Program-made: the position numbers and the translations under genes
In this document: one piece after another, positions 35,871 to 48,689 of the stretch
Layout: the number at the start of each line of letters is the position of its first letter
Position numbering within the stretch: position 1 is the stretch's first letter
Notes under the pieces: model-generated
What the model was told of the DNA's origin: nothing
Database searches by the model: none
Seen by the model: the letters and a program-made list of their open reading frames with translations, nothing else
NCBI GenBank assembly: GCA_977016875.1
Contig: CDRNST010000056.1
Coordinates: forward strand, 806,001 to 870,000
Direction of reading: 5' to 3'
Length of the DNA: 64,000 nucleotides
Source: Pavona decussata
Taxonomy: Eukaryota

Positions 35871-37404
35871 GAAATGTTGACTGCAGGTTTCTTCTGAGTG
35901 GTGTTGCAGCTCAAATGTTCAGAATCAGGCAAGATATTGATTGGAATAGCAAATTAATTTTGAATTTGGTATCACTGATGGAAATTTATTCTATAAAAAT
36001 GTGAGCCAGGTAAAAAAAGAAAGCAAGAACCCGTAGGCTGCAGATTATAGCCCAAGCAAGGCTGACCCAAGGGACAACCTCAGCTAGGAAATTGTCAGTA
36101 GGCAAGCAATTAAGTCTTGCCTTGACAAAACTATGACTTCTGCTGGAGTTCAGCCTTTCAACCCTTATCACACTTTAGTTTTTATTCAAATTCACTGTAA
36201 GTCATGTACATAAATGTACACAATATCAAACAAAATAAAAATAACTTAAAAAACATTCAGTTCATTTATCAACAATTCAGTCCTCCAAGTAATTCAAAAT
36301 AAAAGATATAAACTGAATTCTCTTTTTTTGTGAGAAATATCCATTTGAGATCCTCTGGTCAATTTCGTTTTTCATGTTTTCTTAAGCATGACATATTTTA
36401 ATCAAAGTAAAACTGAACAAGCAAACTTGTGCACAAATTATTAAAAAAACCCTACATTGAATGTACCAAAAGAAAAAACAACAATCTACTGTGGTAATCA
36501 ATCAATTAGATTTTGAAGGATCTCGTGTTATCTTTCGCAACTGATGGTTTCCGATAAGTGTCCGGCAACAATCACCAATTTTTTTGGACCGCCAGATGGC
36601 AAGGGGACAAGCAAGGCATTCTTTAAGCACACAATTGCAAGGTGTATATGTGCAGTACGAAAACAAGAGAGCGACGCTTTTCTCAGTTGGGCGAAAACAA
36701 ACTTGACACAAAGTAATATGTGAATTTTTCTTCTCAGGTATTGTTGGTTCAACAGAATATAAAATGTGAAAAAAAAAGTTTCAGTGAATAACAATGATTG
36801 TGTTATGCAATGTCGGAAGGTTTCAAGCGGGGTTTCTTTCAACACATGCAAATTTAAGTACCGTTTTCAGCACGAAAGTACCTACCAAGCTTTCCGTGTC
36901 TTTATCGTTTCCCTTTTTTAATGATCAGCTGGCACTTTTCGAAGACTTTTCTTGTTTTCTCAACGGGCTGCCGAACACTATTGACATCAAAAGTCTGCAA
37001 AAAGAATACAAATAACAAAACAAGATAAATTAATACAGACATCACGATCGACTGACAAGTTAAATAGTTCAAACGCAATTAATCTGCAATAGATTTTCCA
37101 TGCTGTATCGCTTTTTTTCGAAGCATATTTCGAGGTTTATACATCACTGCATGATGACTTTTGGTCTGCTTGCAGCAATGTAACCAGGCATGGCTTTGTA
37201 ACCACGTAATAATGCGAGTAATGCCGCAGACCGCCATGCCCCAACGCTTTTAGGCGGGAACTTTTTTTTTACGATCTGTAATTCATCCATAGAGAGATTC
37301 TAAATATACAAGAAATAAAAGATCCTCTCTCGGAAAACTTCTCATTTTATGCATGTAAACGAAAACTTGAGTAACACTGGGAAGCCATTTACCACGTGCG
37401 TCAC

Positions 37405-37706
37405 CTCTGTCCATGCCACGATGAAACGTTTTCTTGTTTTCAGGTTCGGTATGATGGAATTGATCGTCAAATAATCCAACTCAAAGAAATCTTCTCCGTC
37501 TATTTCGTTAGCTACATTTGGGTCAAAACACGATAAAAGAGGCAATTATGAAATTTGCTGTTGTATGTACTACCCTCAAGAGGTGGACATCATTTGGATA
37601 TAGTTCAACTCGGCTTACCTTTGAATGCTTCTATCAGGTCATGAAACTCTCTTTCCTTTATGTCCTCCATGGTGGAATCTTTTGACAGATCAAGCACTGA
37701 TGCCAT
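37405..37706 (-). pseudogene. SAM-domain gene, first two exons (EnSpm accessory ORF); downstream exons decayed
   Basis: Exons 37706-37619 and 37511-37405 splice to ..FHDLIEAFKANEIDGEDFFELDYLTINSIIPNLKTRKRFIVAW, a canonical SAM pattern. Confidence 0.75.
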
Positions 37707-38754
37707 TGCAAAAACGGACGAAAAAACCTCTATCGACAGCGGAGAATGTTCACCGGATGGACGTTTCTCACAAACTGAAAGACTTGGCCAGTACAAGTCA
37801 TAAGAATGACATGTCACAAAAGGACTTTCATTATATATACATTACGTGACCAAACAGCATTATTTGATAACCAAAAGTTCATTGTTTTAAAAATAAAAGC
37901 GGTTTTCGTTAAAGTGTCATTTGGTTAATACCTAAGGAAATTCCAGAGATTGTGCGGTTTTTTGATAAAGCCGGTTTCTATTCAAAACTTAGCTTCAAAG
38001 CTCAAGGCCGAGATGTTCAACAAATCAGTAAAAGAATTGAAAAGTGTCACTACTAGCGCCGGTTCCCACGCTAACCTCATAATCACCGAATATCCCGGTC
38101 GGAGTGGAAAAAAAAAAAACTTTCAAGCACTGTGCCGACTGCAATCACCACTAGCGTTAGATCCGGCACACAGATTGGCTGAAATCCATCGCGCTAAAAT
38201 CATACATTAGGACGACTCAGTTCAGTGTAATCTTGTCAAGCAGCTAGGGACCGATGTTTATTGATCGCAAAAGCACTCAAACATATTAGGTTACGGAAAG
38301 CCACAGCCAAAGAAACGAACAGAGGAAGCGGCTGTATATTATTCGGATGCATTTATCTTACTAATCCTCTATTTACACCATTATCGCCAAGTGGGTTGCA
38401 TTGTGTATAAACAGAGCACTTATTTAGCTCTCACAGTCCTATTTCACTTATGAGAAGGACTAAATGTTATTTAAAAAAAACCCACTAGATCGTTTTCGAT
38501 GGTCAGGATCATTATCAGAGTTTGTTGGTGATCTTGATGATGGAAAACGTTCAGTATTTTTTTCAGTAACAGTAAATTTTTATTCATTTAGATATCATGT
38601 CTCAGTTACAACCAACCGGAATATTTCACTGATGTATATTGTAACTTCCGAATAGTAGTGTTAACAACGTGAATATCTTATCTTTGGCGGGAAAACCTTA
38701 GAAAAAGCGGGAAACCCGTCAGGACTATCTCACTAAACTACGGCTACGCGCGCT

Positions 38755-39070
38755 ATGGCGCGCAAGCTTAGGTGCCAGATGTGCTCCACTTTTTACTCGT
38801 TGACAATGGCTTTAATACTGAGTCATTTGCTTAAAGTTCACCAAAGTAATCCTGACTTTTTCATCCGAATGTGATTTCGCTGGTTGCCAACGCACTTTCA
38901 AGAACGTGCATGCCTACAAAAGCCATCTTAGAAGAGCGCAATTATAAAGAAGTCAATCTTCATCAACCGGTCGTGCGTCATGAAGACAGTGTAGCAGAAG
39001 AAGGCATGGAAATTGTAATTGAAGATACACCTCCCGAAGAACACGGAAAAAAGCGGAAAAAAATTAAAAC
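38755..39070 (+). pseudogene. N-terminal double C2H2 zinc finger of an EnSpm-type transposase, truncated
   Basis: MARKLRCQMCSTF...LILSHLLKVH..PDFFIR/CDFAGCQRTFKNVHAYKSHLRR with a frameshift near 38869. It runs into the subterminal repeats. Confidence 0.72.
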
Positions 39071-40023
39071 ACTTGTACTGACTAATGATTTTGGTCGTTT
39101 ACACTAATCAAAATAGTCAGAGTTAAATGACTAATCTCTATGGTTAAAACACCTATTATTAAAGGTTATTTTAACTATTTTAATTTGTTGACAATTTCAA
39201 CTGTTAGGAATGGTTAAAATGACCATTGTTATTAGTCGTGACTATTTAAAATAGTCATTTTAACTAGTCAGTTTTTGCAGTGAAGCTGTGATTTTATCAT
39301 TAACGAGTTCCACACTCACGTTTTTGGCGCCAATGAACTTGGCAATGACTAGTGAAAGACAAACAAATCAATCTCTACAATTAGCTTACCTGGCACTGCG
39401 TACTTTTTCACATCCTCTAAAAAGTTTACATCGGGAAGGGTTGTTCCCTCATCATTTCTCCCTCCCATGCCGGTGGCACTTTTATTCTTTTTCTCGGGAA
39501 CAGGCAGACTATTCAAATCGGGAAGGGGGACTTGAAGTTTTCTCTTCGTGCCTGCTTTTTCTACTTGCCCACCGGTTGTTTTACTAGTGTCATTAACGTC
39601 AATGTCACCAACGTCAATTGGCGTTGTTGGAACTTGGCCAATGGAACTCGCATCTTGAGTTTTTTCCCCAATCTCGTTAAATCGCTCGACAAAGTACGTT
39701 GCCGAATAACATGAACTCTTAAACGATTCCAAGAATTCGTTCTTTGAGAAATCAAACATGTTGACTATCAATCCAATGTAATCTTCAGAGGTTTGAATCT
39801 AGAATTATAGAGAAAACCTACCCTTAAAAATAGATCTTGGCAAACAACGTGAACTTGACAAATAAAGAGCACTTTTGAACTGATCATTTGCCTTTGTCTC
39901 CATTTTACTCTACACGCGTAACAAAATATATTCGTGCGTTTGTAAGTAAAACTGAAATACGTGACAGTGGAAATCCACCTTTTGATAAGTCTTCTTAGTA
40001 CATTTAGAAAATTTGGTAAAGTA

Positions 40024-40087
40024 ACAAAATCAGGTATCAGGGATAAGTATAAAATGATATATATTTATCCCTGATACCTGATTTTGT
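40024..40087. repeat. Perfect 23-bp-arm hairpin
   Basis: ACAAAATCAGGTATCAGGGATAA (40024-46) and its reverse complement (40065-87). Confidence 0.9.
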
Positions 40088-40906
40088 GTGTCTAGATGTC
40101 TGGCAGCCGGACAGGATTTTCAAAATACTCCGTGTCCAGTAGTCTGATAGTTTCTCAATTTCGGGTCTTTGTACGCGAAATAGTCGATTTATGCAATGCT
40201 ATTTTTGTTTGCATCGCGAAGAAGTTGTCGAGTACAGTTCTCAATTTGTCGTGTCGATTTCTCTTACCGCTCCACACTCTATGCATCATCAGACTTGGAA
40301 ATTATTTGCGTGTTTGCAGTGACTGCAGGACAGTATTACTGGCAGTCTCATAATTTCTTTAATTTCGAGTCCATTTACGCGAAATAACCGATTTATGCAA
40401 TGCTATCTTTGTTTGGATTGCTAAAAGTTGTCGATTACAGTTCGATTTCAGTTATGCACCAGTCAATTGAAACCCCCACCCCCCAGGTCCCGGGGAAGGG
40501 TGGGGGATTTGACATAGGCTCTGGTCAAAAGGCATCAATATCCCTACCCCCTGAGGCTGGAGTTCAGATCAAACGCCACTACCCCTGGGGCAAGAAAGCT
40601 GATACTATCAAAAGTTCTAAGAAAAGAACGTGCAAGACCTACATTTACATGGGAAAATTTAATAATGTTCTTCTTCCAGGTTTGTGCAGCTTTGATTAAA
40701 ATGCTAATCACACTCTCATACAGTTTGTTCAACTATTAAACGAAGGAAAAGCATGCTGTATTTCATTATTGGTCATGACCATCTCATTACATGTATTTAA
40801 TAGACTGCAAATTAGTGAAATTTGAAATACACTGTATATATTATCACACAAACTCCGTTTATTTGGCTCAAGTTCAGTTTTTTAGAAATTTAATACCTTA
40901 AACTGT

Positions 40907-43900
40907 CTACTGAGGTGAATTCTCCATGGCTGCAACCTTGCACTGTGCGCAAATCCACTCTCCACTTGGTGCTGTTGAAAGCCCCACACACTGAAAATGG
41001 AACCACTCTATGGGACAGTCTTTATGTTCACAGGCAATCATGTCTCCACACTCTGGCCCTCCACAAATACACCACGAGTCAGGGGTGTCAACAGCTGCTT
41101 TACTAGACTTCTTCTTGAGAGAGTTCTCTTTTCTTTTTGCAGAAGCTTTCTGGGCACCTGCTTGGCGATGTTTCCTCACATCACTTAGGTGTCTTACCCA
41201 CATCTCAACTTCATCGGTACGGAGTAAGGTTTGCTTTGCTAGTTTCTCTATCTCATCGGACGTCAGTTCCAGACATTCCTTTTGTTTTTTGTCAAAGGCA
41301 TCTTTTATCACAGTACTTGGAGGAGAAATGGAGGCTTTGCTCAAATTGCAGTTATCCACTGCTAGCACCTCTTCTGGTCCCTTGTAGTGTCCACTACAAA
41401 TACCACTGCACTTGTCACATTCCTTGGCTCCCCAAGGTCGTTTAGGGTCTGGTACTGGAAATGGCAGGTACTGAATACTTGGCCCTCCTGGGAACCATAA
41501 TGAATCATTGGCTGGTTTTCCGTTCTTGCAAACTGGATGGATGCAACCCTCCTTGTAACAGGCTTTGAGAGCAAACACATACCCACTTGGAAGGTTTGGT
41601 ACCATGTGCTGGTTCCGTAAGTTCCAAACCTGTTCAAAGTAATGATATTGATTTGGCTCCTTCTTCTTGAGTTCGGCCTTAGCTGCTTTGGTTCCCCTCA
41701 AATACACAAGTAAATTCTGTCTCTGATCTTTCAGCTCTGTTGCATGCTTATCTGTGGCACCTCTGTACATTTTTATTACAGATGAACCAAATGGTATGTC
41801 ATTGACTCTATCCAAATACACCTGCAGTGCTGCTTCCATGTTTTCGTGTAATCTATCCTGAGATACTCCTCCCGTTTCAGTTTCGGCAGATCCACACAAT
41901 GTCGACGGTATAAAGAGATTAGCATGCGCTCGGCCAACAACACCATTCTGCAGCTCTACAAGATTGTAACAGCTCGCACCACTGTTCCTTGTTGTGACCA
42001 GTGTCAATTCCCTTCCTTCTTTTAGATGCCATTCGGTCCATCGAAACTGTACCTCAACATGACTTGGGCCCTCATCGGCTCCCCCATCAACTCTAATACA
42101 ATCAATGTTCTTTCCTTCAAAACACACATCCATTTCTGCTTTTTCTTTCAAACAGTACAAGTCAGCAAGATGCTGTGTTGCTGTTTTCTCGTGTAGAACG
42201 CCAGGTGCTTTGACAATCCCAACAGACACTTGACCAGTGGTTTCCGTCTTCATGAATAAGTAAGATGATGTTTGAAGTTGACCTCCGTGTTTGCTTACAT
42301 AGTCAGAATGTGACGTGAGTTCTGGCTTTCCTTCCAAGCAGACAGCTTTATGGTTCTTATGTGTGTAAGTACTATCCAGACGGAATCCTGCTTGGTCGTC
42401 TCTATTGAGAATCATTTTATCTGAACCGTCTTTTAGCTGAAGCATATCAAGGCCCTTGTAAAAGCAGTATGACCAACGGCTATCGGGATTGAATTTGACA
42501 TCAAAACCTTTACGTGCTCTTCTGCAAGTTATTGCTGCAACACCCTGGTAACGCTGAGCCGAAATCCTTCTCTTGTTCCTCACGGCACACAACTGAACAA
42601 CGGTACCATACGATATCGATATGCCATACTCCTTTTGTAGATGCTCTTGCATCCTTTTGTAAGTTACTTTAGGCCCTGTAGAATTCTTATTACTCGCGAA
42701 AGTAAAAACTCCAGTTCTTCGCCACTGGTCTGCACCAACCCGGTGTTTCTGAACAAAGTCTTCCATTTTTTTTCCTATATCAGGGTACTTTGTCACAATG
42801 GTAGACACTTTCTTTGGAATCTTGCGTTTAAGAAGGGCTTCTTTAGCTATAAGCTTTGAAGTTTGCCTTTTAGCAGCCATCTTGATTTTTTTTCTTTCTT
42901 GTTGCACTTTTTCTTTTGCTTCATCAGAACAAATATCATTGATTTCACACCAGTCTCCATCATCAGATTCACTGTCGGTCTCAAATATGGCGTTGCCTAG
43001 AGATTGTTTCCGCAGAATCTCTAAATATGCCTGTCTACTAATTTCGATCAATTGCTCTTCTGCTGTTGAAAGATCACTATAGGGGATGAAATCAGCAAAG
43101 TCAACAAGTATTTGATTTAAAACTTCAGGGTTATCTGTTGGTAACATGTTTTTTAGCTCAGCCACAAATGTAAACCAGTTAAGATTGTTTTCTCTTAGTA
43201 TTAACAACAGTGTTTCTCTTGAAGGTGCTGGATTTACAGTTGGATTTTTCAGTATGTCCGTGTCATCTGGATCAAACATACCCCTGTCTGATGTTCCTTT
43301 TTCCTTTGATACTGCATTTTCTTGTGCAACCTTAACAAAAGAACTCCCATGGTCTGAGCTGTCTGTATCATGTTGTCCTTTATTGGAATGCAGCTGATCA
43401 CTTAATGGAAACTCTTCTTCATCTTCTGTTGCATCTTCTGACGAAATCCATTGAACATCTTGAACTTCGCCAAGGTCAGTACTTTCATCCTCTGAATCAC
43501 TGGATTCGTAGTCAAAGCCAATGGTGCGCAAAAGTGCCTTTTCCTTGACTCGTGCAAGCTCTGCCACTGTTTGTTTGATTTCACTTGCCCTTCTAAGGGT
43601 CTCTTCGATTTTCCTTTGTTTTTCGCCGAGATTTTGAACTCCATATCGCTTCCGAGCTTCTTTAGCGCTAAGCTCAGAACAAGCAGTCATTTTTAGTAGC
43701 AGACGATCTGTTTCAGTGGTTGCTAGTTCACATAAGGCGTTTATTTTTTGTCTAGATGGAAGCTTTTCTCTGACATTTGCTTTCTTCGAATGCAAGAACT
43801 GTCTCATTATGACCACAAATCTTTGTGCATCAACTCCAGGTTGGAATTCTGTAGCATACAGTCTTTTTGATCCTGGGCCTTCAGGTGCAATTTCCATGAC

Positions 43901-44203
43901 AATAAGTGGCAGCTGCATTAGCAGCCTTACCGCCTTTGAACTTATATACTTGACCTTTGGAAAGTGTTTGATAAAAAATGCCTTCAGTTCAACAATTCCA
44001 TTATTTATGACATCGTGGGCAAACGAAATCAGTCCCTCGCACTGTGAACAAACTTGTAATTCTGAACAATGTTTCCTAGAGCAAAATTCTCTCCTTGCAG
44101 CAGGAACTTCTTCAAGTGTCATATCATTAATTAACGCAACATATAAACCATCGTCAACTTTGTATTTAGACACATCCGATAAACAAGAAGAAAGATGTGA
44201 CAC
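40907..44203 (-). CDS. DDE transposase (Zator/TP36-like) with C-terminal homeodomain-like helices and ING-type PHD finger
   Basis: 1098-aa open frame, open from ~44267 with no ATG at its 5' end. The putative triad NRDDQAG / RVDGGADEGP / SGASCYNLVE has D-43-E spacing. C-terminus WCICGGPECGDMIACEHKDCPIEWFHFQCVGLSTAPSGEWICAQC. Confidence 0.82.
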   Translation of the reverse strand: MSHLSSCLSDVSKYKVDDGLYVALINDMTLEEVPAARREFCSRKHCSELQVCSQCEGLISFAHDVINNGIVELKAFFIKHFPKVKYISSKAVRLLMQLPLIVMEIAPEGPGSKRLYATEFQPGVDAQRFVVIMRQFLHSKKANVREKLPSRQKINALCELATTETDRLLLKMTACSELSAKEARKRYGVQNLGEKQRKIEETLRRASEIKQTVAELARVKEKALLRTIGFDYESSDSEDESTDLGEVQDVQWISSEDATEDEEEFPLSDQLHSNKGQHDTDSSDHGSSFVKVAQENAVSKEKGTSDRGMFDPDDTDILKNPTVNPAPSRETLLLILRENNLNWFTFVAELKNMLPTDNPEVLNQILVDFADFIPYSDLSTAEEQLIEISRQAYLEILRKQSLGNAIFETDSESDDGDWCEINDICSDEAKEKVQQERKKIKMAAKRQTSKLIAKEALLKRKIPKKVSTIVTKYPDIGKKMEDFVQKHRVGADQWRRTGVFTFASNKNSTGPKVTYKRMQEHLQKEYGISISYGTVVQLCAVRNKRRISAQRYQGVAAITCRRARKGFDVKFNPDSRWSYCFYKGLDMLQLKDGSDKMILNRDDQAGFRLDSTYTHKNHKAVCLEGKPELTSHSDYVSKHGGQLQTSSYLFMKTETTGQVSVGIVKAPGVLHEKTATQHLADLYCLKEKAEMDVCFEGKNIDCIRVDGGADEGPSHVEVQFRWTEWHLKEGRELTLVTTRNSGASCYNLVELQNGVVGRAHANLFIPSTLCGSAETETGGVSQDRLHENMEAALQVYLDRVNDIPFGSSVIKMYRGATDKHATELKDQRQNLLVYLRGTKAAKAELKKKEPNQYHYFEQVWNLRNQHMVPNLPSGYVFALKACYKEGCIHPVCKNGKPANDSLWFPGGPSIQYLPFPVPDPKRPWGAKECDKCSGICSGHYKGPEEVLAVDNCNLSKASISPPSTVIKDAFDKKQKECLELTSDEIEKLAKQTLLRTDEVEMWVRHLSDVRKHRQAGAQKASAKRKENSLKKKSSKAAVDTPDSWCICGGPECGDMIACEHKDCPIEWFHFQCVGLSTAPSGEWICAQCKVAAMENSPQ

Positions 44204-44241
44204 ATATCGTGTATAAATGTCACTCCTAGGAGCGTCTTTAT

Positions 44242-47200
44242 CTACAAAAAATGAGCCTTGCTCCCACTATCAGCACTCCTTGTGCCATTATTGTTGTCTC
44301 CTTGTGACTCATTTTCTGGTGTATCATTCTCTCCAGGTTTATCTCCAGAATGCTTGGCGACTTCATCAGAAACCCTTGACGACTGTGTTTCTTCCTGATT
44401 AGTACAGGTAGCTTTAGTTGAATTTCCTCTGGCTGTACCTGCTTCCTTACTCAATGGTTCTGCTGGTGTAACTGACTTTCCCCAGAAAGATGTCAATGTC
44501 TTAGTTGAACTACTCGAAGACGATGACCCGTCAGAAGACGAGGAACTGGTTGACTGCTTATCTTTGTACCATTTGGCTTTTGCCTGTTTTTTCTGGATAA
44601 GCAACACCTCTTCTTCATGCTTTCTTTTTTCTTTTCGCAGCTTGGTGATCTCCTCTTCTACCGCAGAGGCTCGCATGTACTGTTTAAGTTGCTCATCTCT
44701 TGCTCTCTGTTGTTGCAAAAGTCGTATTCTATCCGCGAGGCTAGCTATATCATCTGTGAGTTCTTCAACCTTCTTAGTACGTAAGTGCTCAGACATTTTC
44801 ATTTTCTTGCTACTGCTACCATGCTCCATTGATCCTGTTCCAAACAATTTTGATCTTGATCTTTTCTTGCTGTAATTGTAGCCGTCATTATCAAGTTTTT
44901 TACGACAAAGTTCTATAAGGTTCTGTTTGTCATCTAACAGAGTGGGATTTTCAATGCACAATTCAAAGGCATTCGCATTCATTCGTTGATGGTATGTTCT
45001 TGAGCTTTTGGCATACAGCACACTTCTCTTCCTGATATCTTCAACATTCAACTCGACGGTCACTTTGTTAGAGTCTGCTAAAGAAGGCTCATTCTAGAGA
45101 ACAATAATGGAAGCCAAGTAACATAAATATATTGTCTGTGGTCTTATTCACACTAGAAAGATTTTGTTTATAATTATTTCTTTCAGATTTCAGTTTCATG
45201 GGTGACTGGATGTCACTGCATTTTAAAGAGCAACTTAACCCTTTAACACCTGTTTACGTCAGCTGACGTAAAAAGTTCATAAAATTGTTAATATTTGGTC
45301 TATTTCAATGAAATTTTGCCACAAAAATGGTCTTGGAAAGATCAGTTCATTTCCAGAATAAAATTGTACCCCTCTAGTATCTATGACCACCCCTGGAACT
45401 TTTGACAATTTTTTGTTTTACACATTTGCAGTGTGAGACATAACTCATGTTACTCTATTAACTGAGAGCTGCAAAATAAGCTATAGTTTGGGGGTATACC
45501 TAGTATGTCTGAAAATTGAGGCATTTCTGAACTTTTTGACTTTGACATTTTCAGCCCGTTTATGTCAAAGCCATGATTTACTTCTCCAATTTTGATATGA
45601 AATAAGGACTGCACTGGTCAAGACCTTTCAAATGGTATATCATACATTGCCATTTAGGTTTTATTTACGAGTTTGGAAAAAGGGGTAGAAAAACTCAGGA
45701 GTGAAAGGGTTAAACTGAATTTCATTAATAAAATTTAATTTTAAAAGCACAAACCAACAATATTCTAGCAATTTGAAAATAAAAATAGTCAACTAATAGG
45801 TTCTCACAAAAAGCTGGGAGAATAGGTTGTTACAGCACACATGTCAATGTAGCAACAACTACTAAATGCAGTCAAAAATCTGCGACCCAGACTAGAACTG
45901 AAAATAAGGTCCAGATAATTGAAGTGTCATGTATGAATACTAATTTAAAGTGCCACTACGATGAAAATTTTTGTATTTCTTTTTCGCTTTTTTTAGTGCA
46001 AATGTATTTAATAGGTTTAGACAAATGCGAATTGCTATAAATTAGATTGATATATTCTTACACGGCCCAGAAATAGCTGACTGAAAACCCACGAAAATCA
46101 CGTAAAATCCGTCCGCCATTACTCCGTTCATAAATCCGAGCCCACGTTTTACTGGTTTGCGATCTGGTACACTTGACTTGATTTGTGACGTAAATGACTC
46201 AACACGTCATGATTATTATTCCCTCCGGGACACAGACAACAAAGCCAAACGGCACGTGTTGAGTGACGTGTTGAGTCTTTGACGTCACAAAATCTTTAGG
46301 AAAACTCGATCCAACTCTCAGGGTTCGGTCCCGGTCATTTTTTAATTGAGTAATGGCGGCAAGCCGAATTCGAAATGTAAAGTTAAAATAATGGCACTTC
46401 CCGTACGAGTTTTGACTTGAAACTTTGCAAGGTAAGAAACAAGTACTTATATTTTCAAAATATGAAAAGGACAGAAAATGTATATTTTTGATCATAGTAC
46501 CACTTTAACAAATTAGAACAAAATTCTAAAATTCTAATATGTTATACATTTTAATATTTTAATTTCTGGCTAAAAACTCAATTTCCAGTTCAGGAAATGT
46601 TTTGTTTCTGCAAATGGTACCAGATGAGTGTATACATTCTTTGTACTTCTAGTGGTCCTCTGGGCCCCCACCCCTGCTTCTTGGAAATTTCCATTACCAC
46701 CCACGGAGGAGATATGAATATTTTTGTTGGAAAACCAAATTTTAATTGCATAGTTCCTACCTCTAAAGCAGGCCCAATTGAAACTGCTCCATCTTTCATC
46801 AATAAGGTTGTCTGTTTTGAACCACTACCAGAACAGTTCCCTGAGGGTGAAAAATAATTATTATATATTGTATTTAGGATGCAAGGCTGTTGCCTAGCAG
46901 GTTTCCGGTAGTCTGGGACACCCAAGGTACTGTTTTTGGTGCCCAGTAAATGTTTTTCCTAACATTTAACTTTTCTCAGGCTGGGCTCATAACTTCTCAG
47001 TTTTTGGCCTTGTGGGCTCCTTTAAATTTTTCTAAGGCAGAAGCCTTGAAATTTATTCACAAAATTCACAATATGAACACTATAATTGGAGTATCAAAAG
47101 ATTCAACTTCATTTTTCTTATTTAAAATTAAAGTAAATATTCAAGACATACTGTCAGAAGAACAGCTTCTTTAGTAGACAAGTATTAAAATATTTGGTCA

Positions 47201-48012
47201 TTGTAATATATATTCTTAGTCAATTATAGTACTTCATTTATAAGGTATCTGCACCTTAAAGTAAATGTGATGCACAATTTGCTATCACATGTGAAATATA
47301 GACCACTTTTTTCAGATTTTTGTTTTATCCTACTATTATTTGGCAAGAATAATAATCAAACAAATGACAAGTTTGTTTACCTTTAACACTTCCCTTCTCA
47401 TTTCTTGTTGTGTGCAGGGAATCTTTGGGCTGTGCAAAAAAAAAAAGCAAAAACAATTAGGGTTTGCAAACAGATCAGTTCCAAAAACTTTTTCAAAAAC
47501 TAAAGTATTATAAACATAAATCAGTGCAGACATACCTGATCGACGGATGTAGGTTGTGAAACATTTGGAGGTGGCTTCGACTGCAAAACATGCACTTGGA
47601 TTTTATCCTTGTGTTCAATGTTTTGAACGGTAACATCGACCCACTCCCCCCAGTCTTCTTCATACTTTTGGAAAATTATCCGTGCTTCACTGTCCAGGCT
47701 AAAACACTCTTTAACTTTTACAGCAACATCTTCATTTTGATGAAGGTCAAGAACCTTACGGCTTTCTTCGTATTGAAATAAAACCTGTAGGAAATCAAAG
47801 AAGAGAACAGCTCATGACCTGACCTTTCCGCATCATTACCCATGCATACCATTTGAATTTCAATGGAAATTAAATGTAAATAATACATCCAAACAATAGA
47901 AAACAAATTACTTGATTCAGATTGAATATCAATTGCAGTGGATGGTAAAGTAAAAGCATGATATGCGTGGATTCAAACCACTGTTACGTACCTTTCTTTC
48001 GCCTTCCGCCAT
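44242..48012 (-). CDS. ORF1 of the Zator-like element: 5 exons, ~416 aa, UBL/PB1-like N-terminus, NAB-NCD2-like domain and coiled coil
   Basis: GT-AG, phase-compatible, stop-free exons 48012-47992, 47784-47536, 47429-47381, 46840-46761 and 45093-44242. Motifs IIFQKYEEDWGEWVDV..IEHKDKIQV and EDIRKRSVLY..MNANAFELCIENPTLL..LIELCRK...GYNYSKKRSRSK. Confidence 0.82.
45239..45709. mobile_element. piggyBac-type MITE in ORF1 intron 4
   Basis: ttaa|CCCTTTAACACC ... GGAGTGAAAGGG|ttaa. Confidence 0.75.
45949..46504. mobile_element. Kolobok-type MITE in ORF1 intron 4
   Basis: ttaa|AGTGCCACTACGATGAAAA ... TTTTGATCATAGTACCACT|ttaa. Confidence 0.75.
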
Positions 48013-48689
48013 CTTGGAAGTTCCATGTGAAGTACTAGTGCCCAGTTCCACTCTTGCCCGAGGTGGGGACGGGAACCGCGGTCGAAAACAGTCAAATGCA
48101 CCACCCCCAGAGGACAGCTTGTTGTTCAAAAGTGATTCGATGCCCCTATTTTCCCCCACCCTTCCCCGGGACCTGGGGGGTGGGGGTTTCAATTGACTGG
48201 TGCATTACTGCCGGGTGCGGAGTGTTTTGAAAATGATGTCCGGCAGTAACCAAAAACACGCAAATAATTTCCAAGTCTGATGATGCATAGAATGCGGAGC
48301 GGTCAGAGAAATCGACACAACAAATTCAGAACTGTAATCGACAACTTCTTTGCGATGCAAACAAAAATAGCATTGCATAAATAGACTATTTTGCGTGCAA
48401 AGACCCGAAATTGAGAAATTATCGGACTGCCGGAGACGGAGTATTTTGAAAATCCTGTCCGGCTGCCGGACATCTAGACACAGCGTTTAATTAATACTAG
48501 TACTTCCAAGATCTCTGAGTGTGGGTATACTTAAAGTCAATATGAGCCAGAATTCGCAAAACTCTTTAGTGGCTTGTTACTTTAAATCATAATCGAACTT
48601 TGAACAAAGCAAAAACTTGCGGTTTTTTACCTTAAGTTTCTCATCTTTTGTGTCGCTTCTCATTACATCAACACTGACAACGTGCCCAA

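Follow-up and report, generated by a model that had tools for sequence, protein, structure and literature searches.

Likely programmed -1 ribosomal frameshifting in the transposase gene of a family of eukaryotic cut-and-paste DNA transposons

How can a transposase be made from an open reading frame (ORF) that has no initiation codon near its start and is out of frame with the ORF that precedes it? This question is raised by a DNA transposon on the minus strand of a 64,000-nucleotide (nt) stretch of Pavona decussata DNA (GenBank assembly GCA_977016875.1, contig CDRNST010000056.1, positions 806,001 to 870,000), hereafter called the window, whose positions are used below. An original prediction, made from this stretch alone, held that the first ORF (ORF1) is fused to the transposase ORF (ORF2) by a -1 frameshift. 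After comparing the junction with those of related elements, we consider it likely, as far as sequence can tell, that the transposase is made by conserved programmed -1 ribosomal frameshifting, with a logic like that of OrfA and OrfAB in the bacterial IS3 elements. The features of the junction are the following.

44242..45093, minus strand: ORF1 body, equal to exon 5 (283 codons plus stop), comprising a domain like NCD2/MADF, a coiled coil and, at its end, a low-complexity tail that closes with AHFL and the stop
44245..44251, minus strand: slippery heptamer T_TTT_TTG in the phase of ORF1, read from the sequence
44242..44244, minus strand: ORF1 stop codon TAG, immediately past the heptamer, which may act as a stimulator
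44221..44234, minus strand: weak hairpin CGCTC-CTAG-GAGTG, 10 nt past the heptamer, the sole consensus structure of the window's clade
44192..44227, minus strand: second, more stable local hairpin (GUGACAU...AUGUGUCAC), z-score -1.3 to -2.0, not conserved in the clade
40907..44267, minus strand: ORF2 open frame, -1 with respect to ORF1 (1,119 codons plus stop), the transposase body

The 3' end of ORF1 reads ...GCT CAT TTT TTG TAG on the minus strand, and both the AHFL ending and the in-phase heptamer described in the original prediction were found there, with T_TTT_TTG occupying 44251..44245 and TAG 44244..44242. From 44267, following TGA TAG, the ORF2 frame stays open as far as its stop at 40907-40909; the overlap with ORF1 is 25 nt, the same as the distance of about 25 nt that had been given for the opening of the transposase frame before the ORF1 stop. 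The first methionine of ORF2 is codon 48 after the opening and lies 43 codons downstream of the heptamer, in agreement with the claim that the first 40 or so codons hold no ATG. The weak hairpin was likewise found 10 nt after the heptamer, at 44234..44221, and the second hairpin is located at position +18 from the site.

A total of 17 junctions were compared, nine of them from lineages of this genome and eight from contigs of other samples encoding ORF2 relatives, including Tara Oceans and JGI metagenomes; they represent 12 clades, which are 23-45% identical to each other over the first 500 residues of ORF2. The window's junction recurred unchanged in all three copies of the genome and in a metagenomic copy of 99% from an independent assembly. 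At all 17 junctions ORF2 was in the -1 frame of a long ORF1, and exactly one in-phase T_TTT was present inside the overlap, which extended over 10-118 nt (10-16 nt in five lineages) when counted from the last upstream stop in the ORF2 frame to the ORF1 stop. An in-phase T_TTT_TTA or T_TTT_TTG occurred at 13 of these junctions, compared with 4 occurrences among 18,540 codons elsewhere in these elements, and the run was T6 in 13 lineages, T5 in two and T4 in two. Since the same junction is present in all copies and T_TTT_TTR is in phase at 13/17 junctions, the arrangement is, on the sequences, beyond chance. The -1 overlap and the in-phase T-run were both kept in the 12 clades, as the original prediction would have them.

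The reading frames on both sides of the T-run were also consistent with translation across it. The low-complexity tail of ORF1 varies from about 60 to 200 residues among lineages, yet it is open to its end. Between the window element (L006) and its 82% relative L043, the ratio of nonsynonymous to synonymous substitution rates (dN/dS) over the last 90 codons of ORF1 was 0.47 and the four indels were all in frame, which shows that the tail is coding up to the T-run. On the ORF2 side, the initiator methionine was not conserved among lineages and the residues of the N-terminal region were. Relatives of ORF2 numbered 14 by word search (one of them from the sea anemone Exaiptasia) and 2,001 by exhaustive profile search; all the database gene models seen for ORF2 relatives start at an internal methionine, as does the Exaiptasia protein P0007, which is uninformative on the junction. 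A search of the Pavona genome with ORF1 gave no new intact lineages, only more copies of L011 and L019 and decayed copies. The Logan contigs L042, L044, L048, L050 and L052 were considered as possible transcripts and rejected, because they look genomic, with terminal inverted repeat (TIR) ends or with an ORF1 exon that is bounded by a stop and has no exons before it.

In most lineages, the 70 nt past the site had a more stable fold than windows slid along the same elements (Fisher p = 2e-7), and the 60 nt past the junctions averaged -14.0 kcal/mol, compared with -8.9 kcal/mol at 94 control in-phase T_TTT sites (p = 8e-4), p-values that treat the lineages as independent and overstate that independence where lineages are related. 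The direction of this result is still clear in the sequences when they are taken as 12 clades, and the z-scores against dinucleotide shuffles were negative in 15 of 17 lineages, with a mean of -1.65. A 3' stimulatory structure is expected about 5-9 nt downstream of a slippery site; here the hairpins started 1-11 nt past the heptamer, and their sequences were unrelated between lineages. The stem arms were CCUGUAGCAG/CUGCUACAGG in L011 (10 bp), CCCCUCCAGUU/GACUGGAGGGG in L013 (11 bp), GGACAGUCA/UGACUGUCC in L046 and L049 (11 bp in L049), GCUCUGAA/UUCAGAGC in L044 and GGUCAAGG/CCUUGACC in L035. A common stem base was found in L013, L019 and L025, whose apical parts differ and are, in each of the three, mutually complementary. 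No Rfam match was obtained around the window's site.

The ORF1 stop followed the site directly in seven lineages and was inside it in two more (L013 and L052), which gave a class of nine junctions with such a stop (the window, L009, L016, L042, L043, L045, L048, L013 and L052) and a class of eight with no adjacent stop (L011, L018, L019, L025, L035, L044, L046 and L049). Downstream folding averaged -10.5 kcal/mol in the former, not significantly different from the controls, whereas it was strong in 8/8 lineages of the latter, with a mean of -17.9 kcal/mol (p = 3e-6 against the controls); the two classes differed from each other with p = 0.004. The presence of strong hairpins where the adjacent stop is absent suggests, from these sequences, that an adjacent stop and a roadblock hairpin are two interchangeable alternative 3' stimulators. 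Three lineages (L013, L016 and L048) had both an adjacent stop and a strong hairpin, which makes the mutual exclusion a tendency. The anatomy of the junction is conserved, and so are its stimulators.

Upstream of exon 5, four short exons were recognised whose borders are GT-AG and whose phases agree, giving four introns; without exon 3, exons 2 and 4 would be out of phase.

47992..48012, minus strand: predicted exon 1 (ATG, MAEGERK, donor AAG/gtacgt), a putative assignment
47536..47784, minus strand: predicted exon 2 of 83 codons, in phase 0 at both borders, with tblastx conservation with L046 and no Pfam match
47381..47429, minus strand: predicted exon 3, 49 nt, ending in phase 1, its donor phase-compatible with the T-run 'acceptor'; no conservation match of its own
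46761..46840, minus strand: predicted exon 4 of 80 nt (phase 1 to 0), for which L016 and L046 show conservation

These upstream exons supply the ATG, and therefore ORF1 was computed as 416 amino acids (aa) and the fusion as about 1,528 aa, close to the 1,500 aa or so that had been predicted. The 83-residue module of exon 2 (VLFQYEESRKVLDL...WGEWVDV...), which is conserved in L046, was without a Pfam match.

We propose that a single spliced gene would be expressed as follows. Most ribosomes would translate the mRNA of exons 1-5 up to the TAG and release the 416-aa ORF1 protein, with its NCD2/MADF-like domain, coiled coil and disordered tail. A minority, with UUU in the P site and UUG and then UAG next, would slip by -1 on T_TTT_TTG and continue into the fusion of about 1,528 aa, which carries helix-turn-helix (HTH), DDE, homeodomain-like and PHD modules and would be the transposase. 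Slippage would be promoted by the adjacent, slowly decoded stop in the window's lineage and by a stable hairpin 1-11 nt downstream in others, and the transposase would be held at a constant, low proportion of the ORF1 protein, in the manner of IS3/IS1 and of Gag/Gag-Pol. The ribosomal slippage itself and its efficiency are what we infer. The junction peptide had been predicted as ...AHFFVDKD..., which may be produced if slippage occurs in the P site only; classical tandem slippage, because the Leu-tRNA is retained, would give ...AHFLVDKD..., and so the product could contain either ...AHFLVDK... (tandem slip) or ...AHFFVDK... (P-site slip). By analogy with OrfA-OrfAB of IS3/IS1 and with retroviral Gag/Gag-Pol, ORF1 may be a regulator or a DNA-binding partner and the fusion would be the enzyme. 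In its widest form, the proposal is that a whole animal (cnidarian-type) Zator-like clade has convergently evolved the IS3/IS1 logic, with U_UUU_UUR slippage, an OrfA-like protein plus an OrfAB-like one of about 1,500 aa, and two interchangeable stimulators; we hold this to be more likely than not, with somewhat less assurance than the frameshift as such.

The sequences agreed with every comparative prediction of -1 frameshifting that could be tested here. Several observations nevertheless weigh against the frameshift, besides the relatedness of the lineages noted above and a likeness to splice sites discussed below. Four lineages have non-classical sites, T_TTT_C (GAT_TTT_CAx) in L019 and L025 and T_TTT_TAR (GAT_TTT_TAR) in L013 and L052, the stop being the A-site codon in the GAT_TTT_TAR lineages. 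In the window itself, the G at position 7 of the heptamer is unfavourable for A-site re-pairing in eukaryotic assays, and the 3' folding z-score is only -1.3 to -2.0. The consensus hairpin of the window's clade is weak (5-6 bp and -5.5 kcal/mol by RNAalifold with four lineages), with one one-sided change, no compensatory change, no covariation and a loop of variable length. Finally, the distant relative P0076 (L076), with about 34% identity in the core and from a GC-rich host, is an ordinary ATG-started ORF with no overlapping ORF1; therefore, on sequence comparison, the two-ORF frameshift design is confined to a subclade, as a derived trait of the clade, and is not universal in the wider family.

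The strongest competitor of ribosomal slippage is alternative splicing, in which the T-run plus AG would be a 3' splice site, the transposase would be encoded by exons 1-3 (through the exon-3 or another donor) joined to ORF2, and ORF1 would come from an isoform in which exons 4-5 are retained and translation goes a few codons beyond the acceptor. The element does have spliceosomal introns, TTTTTTGTAG/A matches the acceptor consensus, and an AG is found within 4 nt of the T-run in nine of the 17 lineages. The original prediction had itself pointed to TTTTTTGTAG as a good acceptor, phase-compatible with the exon-3 donor, and the phases did match, the donor (…AAAG/gtaaac) ending in phase 1 and gtag/AT AAA starting in phase 1; the case for the acceptor was weakened by the poor tract, the upstream AG and the varying phase. 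The pyrimidine content of the 22 nt before it was 0.45 in the window (mean of 0.52 over the lineages) versus 0.64-0.86 at the four real acceptors, the tract being only 6-8 nt long and within purine-rich coding sequence. The window has another AG 13 nt before the candidate acceptor, and in 15/17 lineages one occurs 7-18 nt before it, within the zone from which AG is normally absent. Past the T-run, the first AG was in phase 0, 1 and 2 in one, nine and seven lineages, respectively, and differed even within the window's clade (phase 0 in L042 and phase 1 in the window). Splicing would also leave unexplained why ORF1 is open exactly to the T-run in all lineages despite a tail whose length varies from about 60 to 200 aa, why the T-run has a constant TTT phase, and why there are adjacent stops in nine lineages and hairpins elsewhere. 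We regard splicing as unlikely, though still the foremost of the alternatives. A homopolymer run as the conserved core of the site would equally suit a stuttering RNA polymerase II, which by adding one U on T6 to some transcripts would give exactly the ORF1-ORF2 fusion, and potyvirus P3N-PIPO is a precedent for such transcriptional slippage. However, the runs are short (T4-T6), and the strict codon phase, the adjacent stop and the downstream hairpins are features of ribosomal and not of polymerase slippage, which leaves this explanation improbable.

A fusion would not be needed at all if ORF2 were translated alone, by termination-reinitiation or internal initiation, to yield two separate proteins. 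The ORF1 stop overlaps an ATG of the ORF2 frame (TTA TGA / ATG A) at L045:5995-6004 and L048:265-274, and L044 has an ATG right after the T-run; in these three lineages reinitiation might add to slippage or replace it. The other 14 lineages, however, have no ATG near the junction, the first methionine of the window's ORF2 comes 43 codons past the heptamer and is not conserved whereas the residues preceding it are, and the ATG of L044, L045 and L048 is a by-product of TTA followed by TG(A/C). Independent translation of ORF2 is, in our judgement, a shade less credible still than polymerase slippage. There is, lastly, the possibility of a dead gene, one ORF having been cut in two by a private 1-bp indel or by an assembly error. 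Homopolymer runs are error-prone, and the original prediction had named homologues with one continuous ORF as the finding that would speak for such an accident. Neither the word search nor the exhaustive profile search of proteins returned a match longer than ORF2 alone. The junction, moreover, is identical in the three genomic copies and in the independent assembly and is kept in 12 divergent clades and in other samples, and the signs of recent activity described below (perfect ends, target duplications and a deletion derivative) also speak against a dead gene. With the copies, the independent assembly, the conservation across clades and the lack of a continuous-ORF relative all opposed to it, a private indel or assembly error was rejected and its probability can be taken as negligible. 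Programmed -1 ribosomal frameshifting thus remains the reading that we prefer.

The limits of the element that carries this gene were set by comparison with the rest of the genome (602 Mb).

40455..48204, minus strand: the full transposon of 7,750 bp, a span matched exactly by the copies at C58 and C436
48205..48207, minus strand: target-site duplication TAA, 5' side; TAA flanks 3/3 copies and there is one TAA at the empty site
40452..40454, minus strand: target-site duplication TAA, 3' side, from the flanks of the copies and the empty site
48149..48204, minus strand: 5' TIR of about 56 bp, starting TGCACCAGTCAATTGAAACC, from inverted self-matches of 56 nt
40455..40510, minus strand: 3' TIR, from inverted self-matches

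Three near-identical copies (C56, C58 and C436) were found in the genome, all flanked by TAA, and a related empty site at C85:4875925 carries a single TAA; the target duplication is taken to be TAA because it is on both sides of the copies and single at the empty site. At C54:1413617-1415242 there is a 1.6-kb internally deleted derivative, in which the first 342 bp are joined to the last 1,286 bp and both ends are intact; from its sequence it is a non-autonomous copy and a sign of recent activity. The perfect ends, the target duplications and this deletion derivative point to an intact cut-and-paste DNA transposon that was recently active. The contig ends L048:4170-4221 and L050:4750-4830 have similar termini (...CCCGGGG...TGACTGGCGCA and then TTA), and because these distant termini are alike, inverted ends rich in G and C and a TWA target would be traits of the family.

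The element is itself inserted in another short repeat (window 40079-40453 and 48205-48490), copies of which are tandem or inverted elsewhere (C85, C188, C354, C93 and others); an uninterrupted host repeat at C85:4875532-4876210 is the source of the empty site. A separate abundant mobile element lies next to the transposon, at window 36000-39286; it measures at least 3.3 kb, reaching the edge of the stretch that was searched, and has more than 20 genomic copies at 92-97% identity.

For the protein domains, exons and ORFs were searched as separate pieces. Pfam gave a weak NCD2/MADF-like stretch in ORF1 and, in ORF2, the C-terminal PHD finger as the only recognised domain; the catalytic domain came from structure prediction.

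40937..41050, minus strand: C-terminal PHD finger (Pfam)
41777..42514, minus strand: RNase H-like DDE catalytic domain, ORF2 residues about 580-825, in an AlphaFold2 model with a predicted local distance difference test (pLDDT) score of 84.7; best matches Mos1 and Metnase (Z 9.3-10.2)

No transposase family was recognised in Pfam searches of ORF2, its 14 homologues and nine distant representatives, which returned only PHD, homeodomain-like matches and noise, and the PDB searched by sequence profile gave no match for ORF2. An alignment of 12 sequences gave an AlphaFold2 model with a pLDDT of 50, which was unusable, and an alignment of 52 sequences was used; with it, ORF2 residues 470-960 were modelled with confidence (pLDDT 84.7). 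The best structural match in the PDB was the transposase of mariner Mos1, with a Z of 10.2 and the HTH part included; Metnase and the catalytic domain of Mos1 matched with a Z of 9.3 and a root-mean-square deviation of 3.1-3.2 over 171-174 residues, Sleeping Beauty followed with a Z of 7.9, and integrases and IstA ranked below the mariner-type matches. The nearly invariant columns of the alignment point to D618/D619, D722 and E766 as candidates for the catalytic triad. Weak homeodomain matches (best E = 6e-4) were seen in 6 of the 14 homologues just before the PHD finger (about window 41050-41300; P0004-P0011), with the motif ...LAKKTLL..EV.MWF.HL...RRK.GA.KA. The PHD finger was absent from some relatives, and the distant P0161 has in its place a weak, sub-threshold Agenet-like match.

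From the sequence features and the model together, the element has a DDE core of mariner fold and is probably Zator-like. The 3-bp duplication, the 56-bp TIRs and the mariner-like fold fit Zator, as do the language-model neighbours, which were proteins of Mucoromycota and Cnidaria, and a language-model lead to ISAzo13/TP36 (PF07592), which at 0.83 was below the trust level. PF07592 had no match in 14 members. Membership of PIF/Harbinger, whose target duplications are also TWA, was considered. PIF/Harbinger elements have a transposase of about 400 aa and, next to its gene, a second one of Myb-like type; here the core is mariner-like, there is one gene instead of two, and neither ORF2 nor 23 relatives had a DDE_Tnp_4 or Plant_tran match in Pfam. 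PIF/Harbinger was excluded because its type of transposase is absent. Membership of IS3 was rejected as well, with no rve match, integrases ranking below mariner and four GT-AG introns in the gene; only the expression logic is common. Zator is described as a TP36-related member of the IS630-Tc1-mariner group that is present in Rhizophagus and animals (PMC7386202, PMC5751038). Compared by description only, it resembles the window element in its 3-bp target duplication, its TIRs and a DDE core nearest to mariner/Tc1, and differs from it in that PF07592 has no match here and the window termini are TG..CA. Frameshifting in Zator was not mentioned in the papers found by the literature search.

The mechanism proposed is already known; its use in such transposons is not. 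Programmed -1 frameshifting is textbook knowledge for retroelements, RNA viruses and bacterial insertion sequences, and the dosage of eukaryotic cut-and-paste transposases is thought to be set by transcription, splicing and small RNAs. In the literature searched for frameshifting in Zator or other eukaryotic DNA transposons, Kat1 was the sole case found, and no paper was found that links animal cut-and-paste elements with frameshifting. If the reading is true, it would be the first case of programmed -1 frameshifting shared by a whole family of active eukaryotic cut-and-paste transposons; it would add translational dosage control to the biology of class II transposons, and it would account for the splitting or truncation of these transposases by gene predictors. 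Any construct meant to produce a working transposase of the family would then need to allow for the frameshift. The exchange between hairpin and adjacent stop would provide a natural series of variants for termination pausing and -1 slippage on 80S ribosomes.

The retroviral and long terminal repeat (LTR) gag-pol systems are the nearest in the site itself. The heptamer of HIV-1 gag-pol is T_TTT_TTA (U_UUU_UUA, with a stem-loop), and most of the lineages studied here use the identical T_TTT_TTA, with a stem-loop a short distance downstream; the short and the long product would be expected in a set ratio. In contrast to them, the window element belongs to class II (DNA) and does not go through reverse transcription, and it has T_TTT_TTG, an adjacent stop and a weak hairpin. 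The Tec elements of Euplotes are IS630/Tc1-related eukaryotic DNA transposons, as the present one would be, and their transposase needs a recoding event as well; it is, however, a +1 frameshift at AAA-stop sites, which occurs genome-wide in the host, and there is no -1 heptamer with hairpin or stop stimulators.

Kat1 of Kluyveromyces lactis is a domesticated hAT transposase expressed via a programmed -1 frameshift, which limits its expression (PMC4763223, PMC4316626). It resembles what is proposed here in that programmed -1 frameshifting joins the reading frames of a DDE transposase in a eukaryote. It is, however, a single domesticated hAT host gene, whereas the present signal is conserved in a dozen divergent, mobile and multicopy lineages of a different superfamily in animals.

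In overall design, the closest counterparts are IS3 and IS1, with their OrfA and OrfAB and the heptamers A_AAA_AAG or A_AAA_AAC. The likeness covers an upstream ORF with a putative DNA-binding part and a coiled coil, a DDE part in the -1 frame without its own start, a homopolymeric heptamer in a short overlap, a hairpin, pseudoknot or nearby stop as the 3' stimulator, and a fusion that would be the transposase. The window element differs from them in being eukaryotic, in its four spliceosomal introns, in a run of T and not of A, in a fold nearest to mariner/Tc1 and not to IS3 or integrases, and in a far larger fusion (about 1,528 aa) with PHD and homeodomain-like modules. Because there is no sequence homology to IS3/IS1, an IS3-like logic here would be convergent, and, if the reading is true, the OrfA/OrfAB design would have evolved convergently across domains of life.

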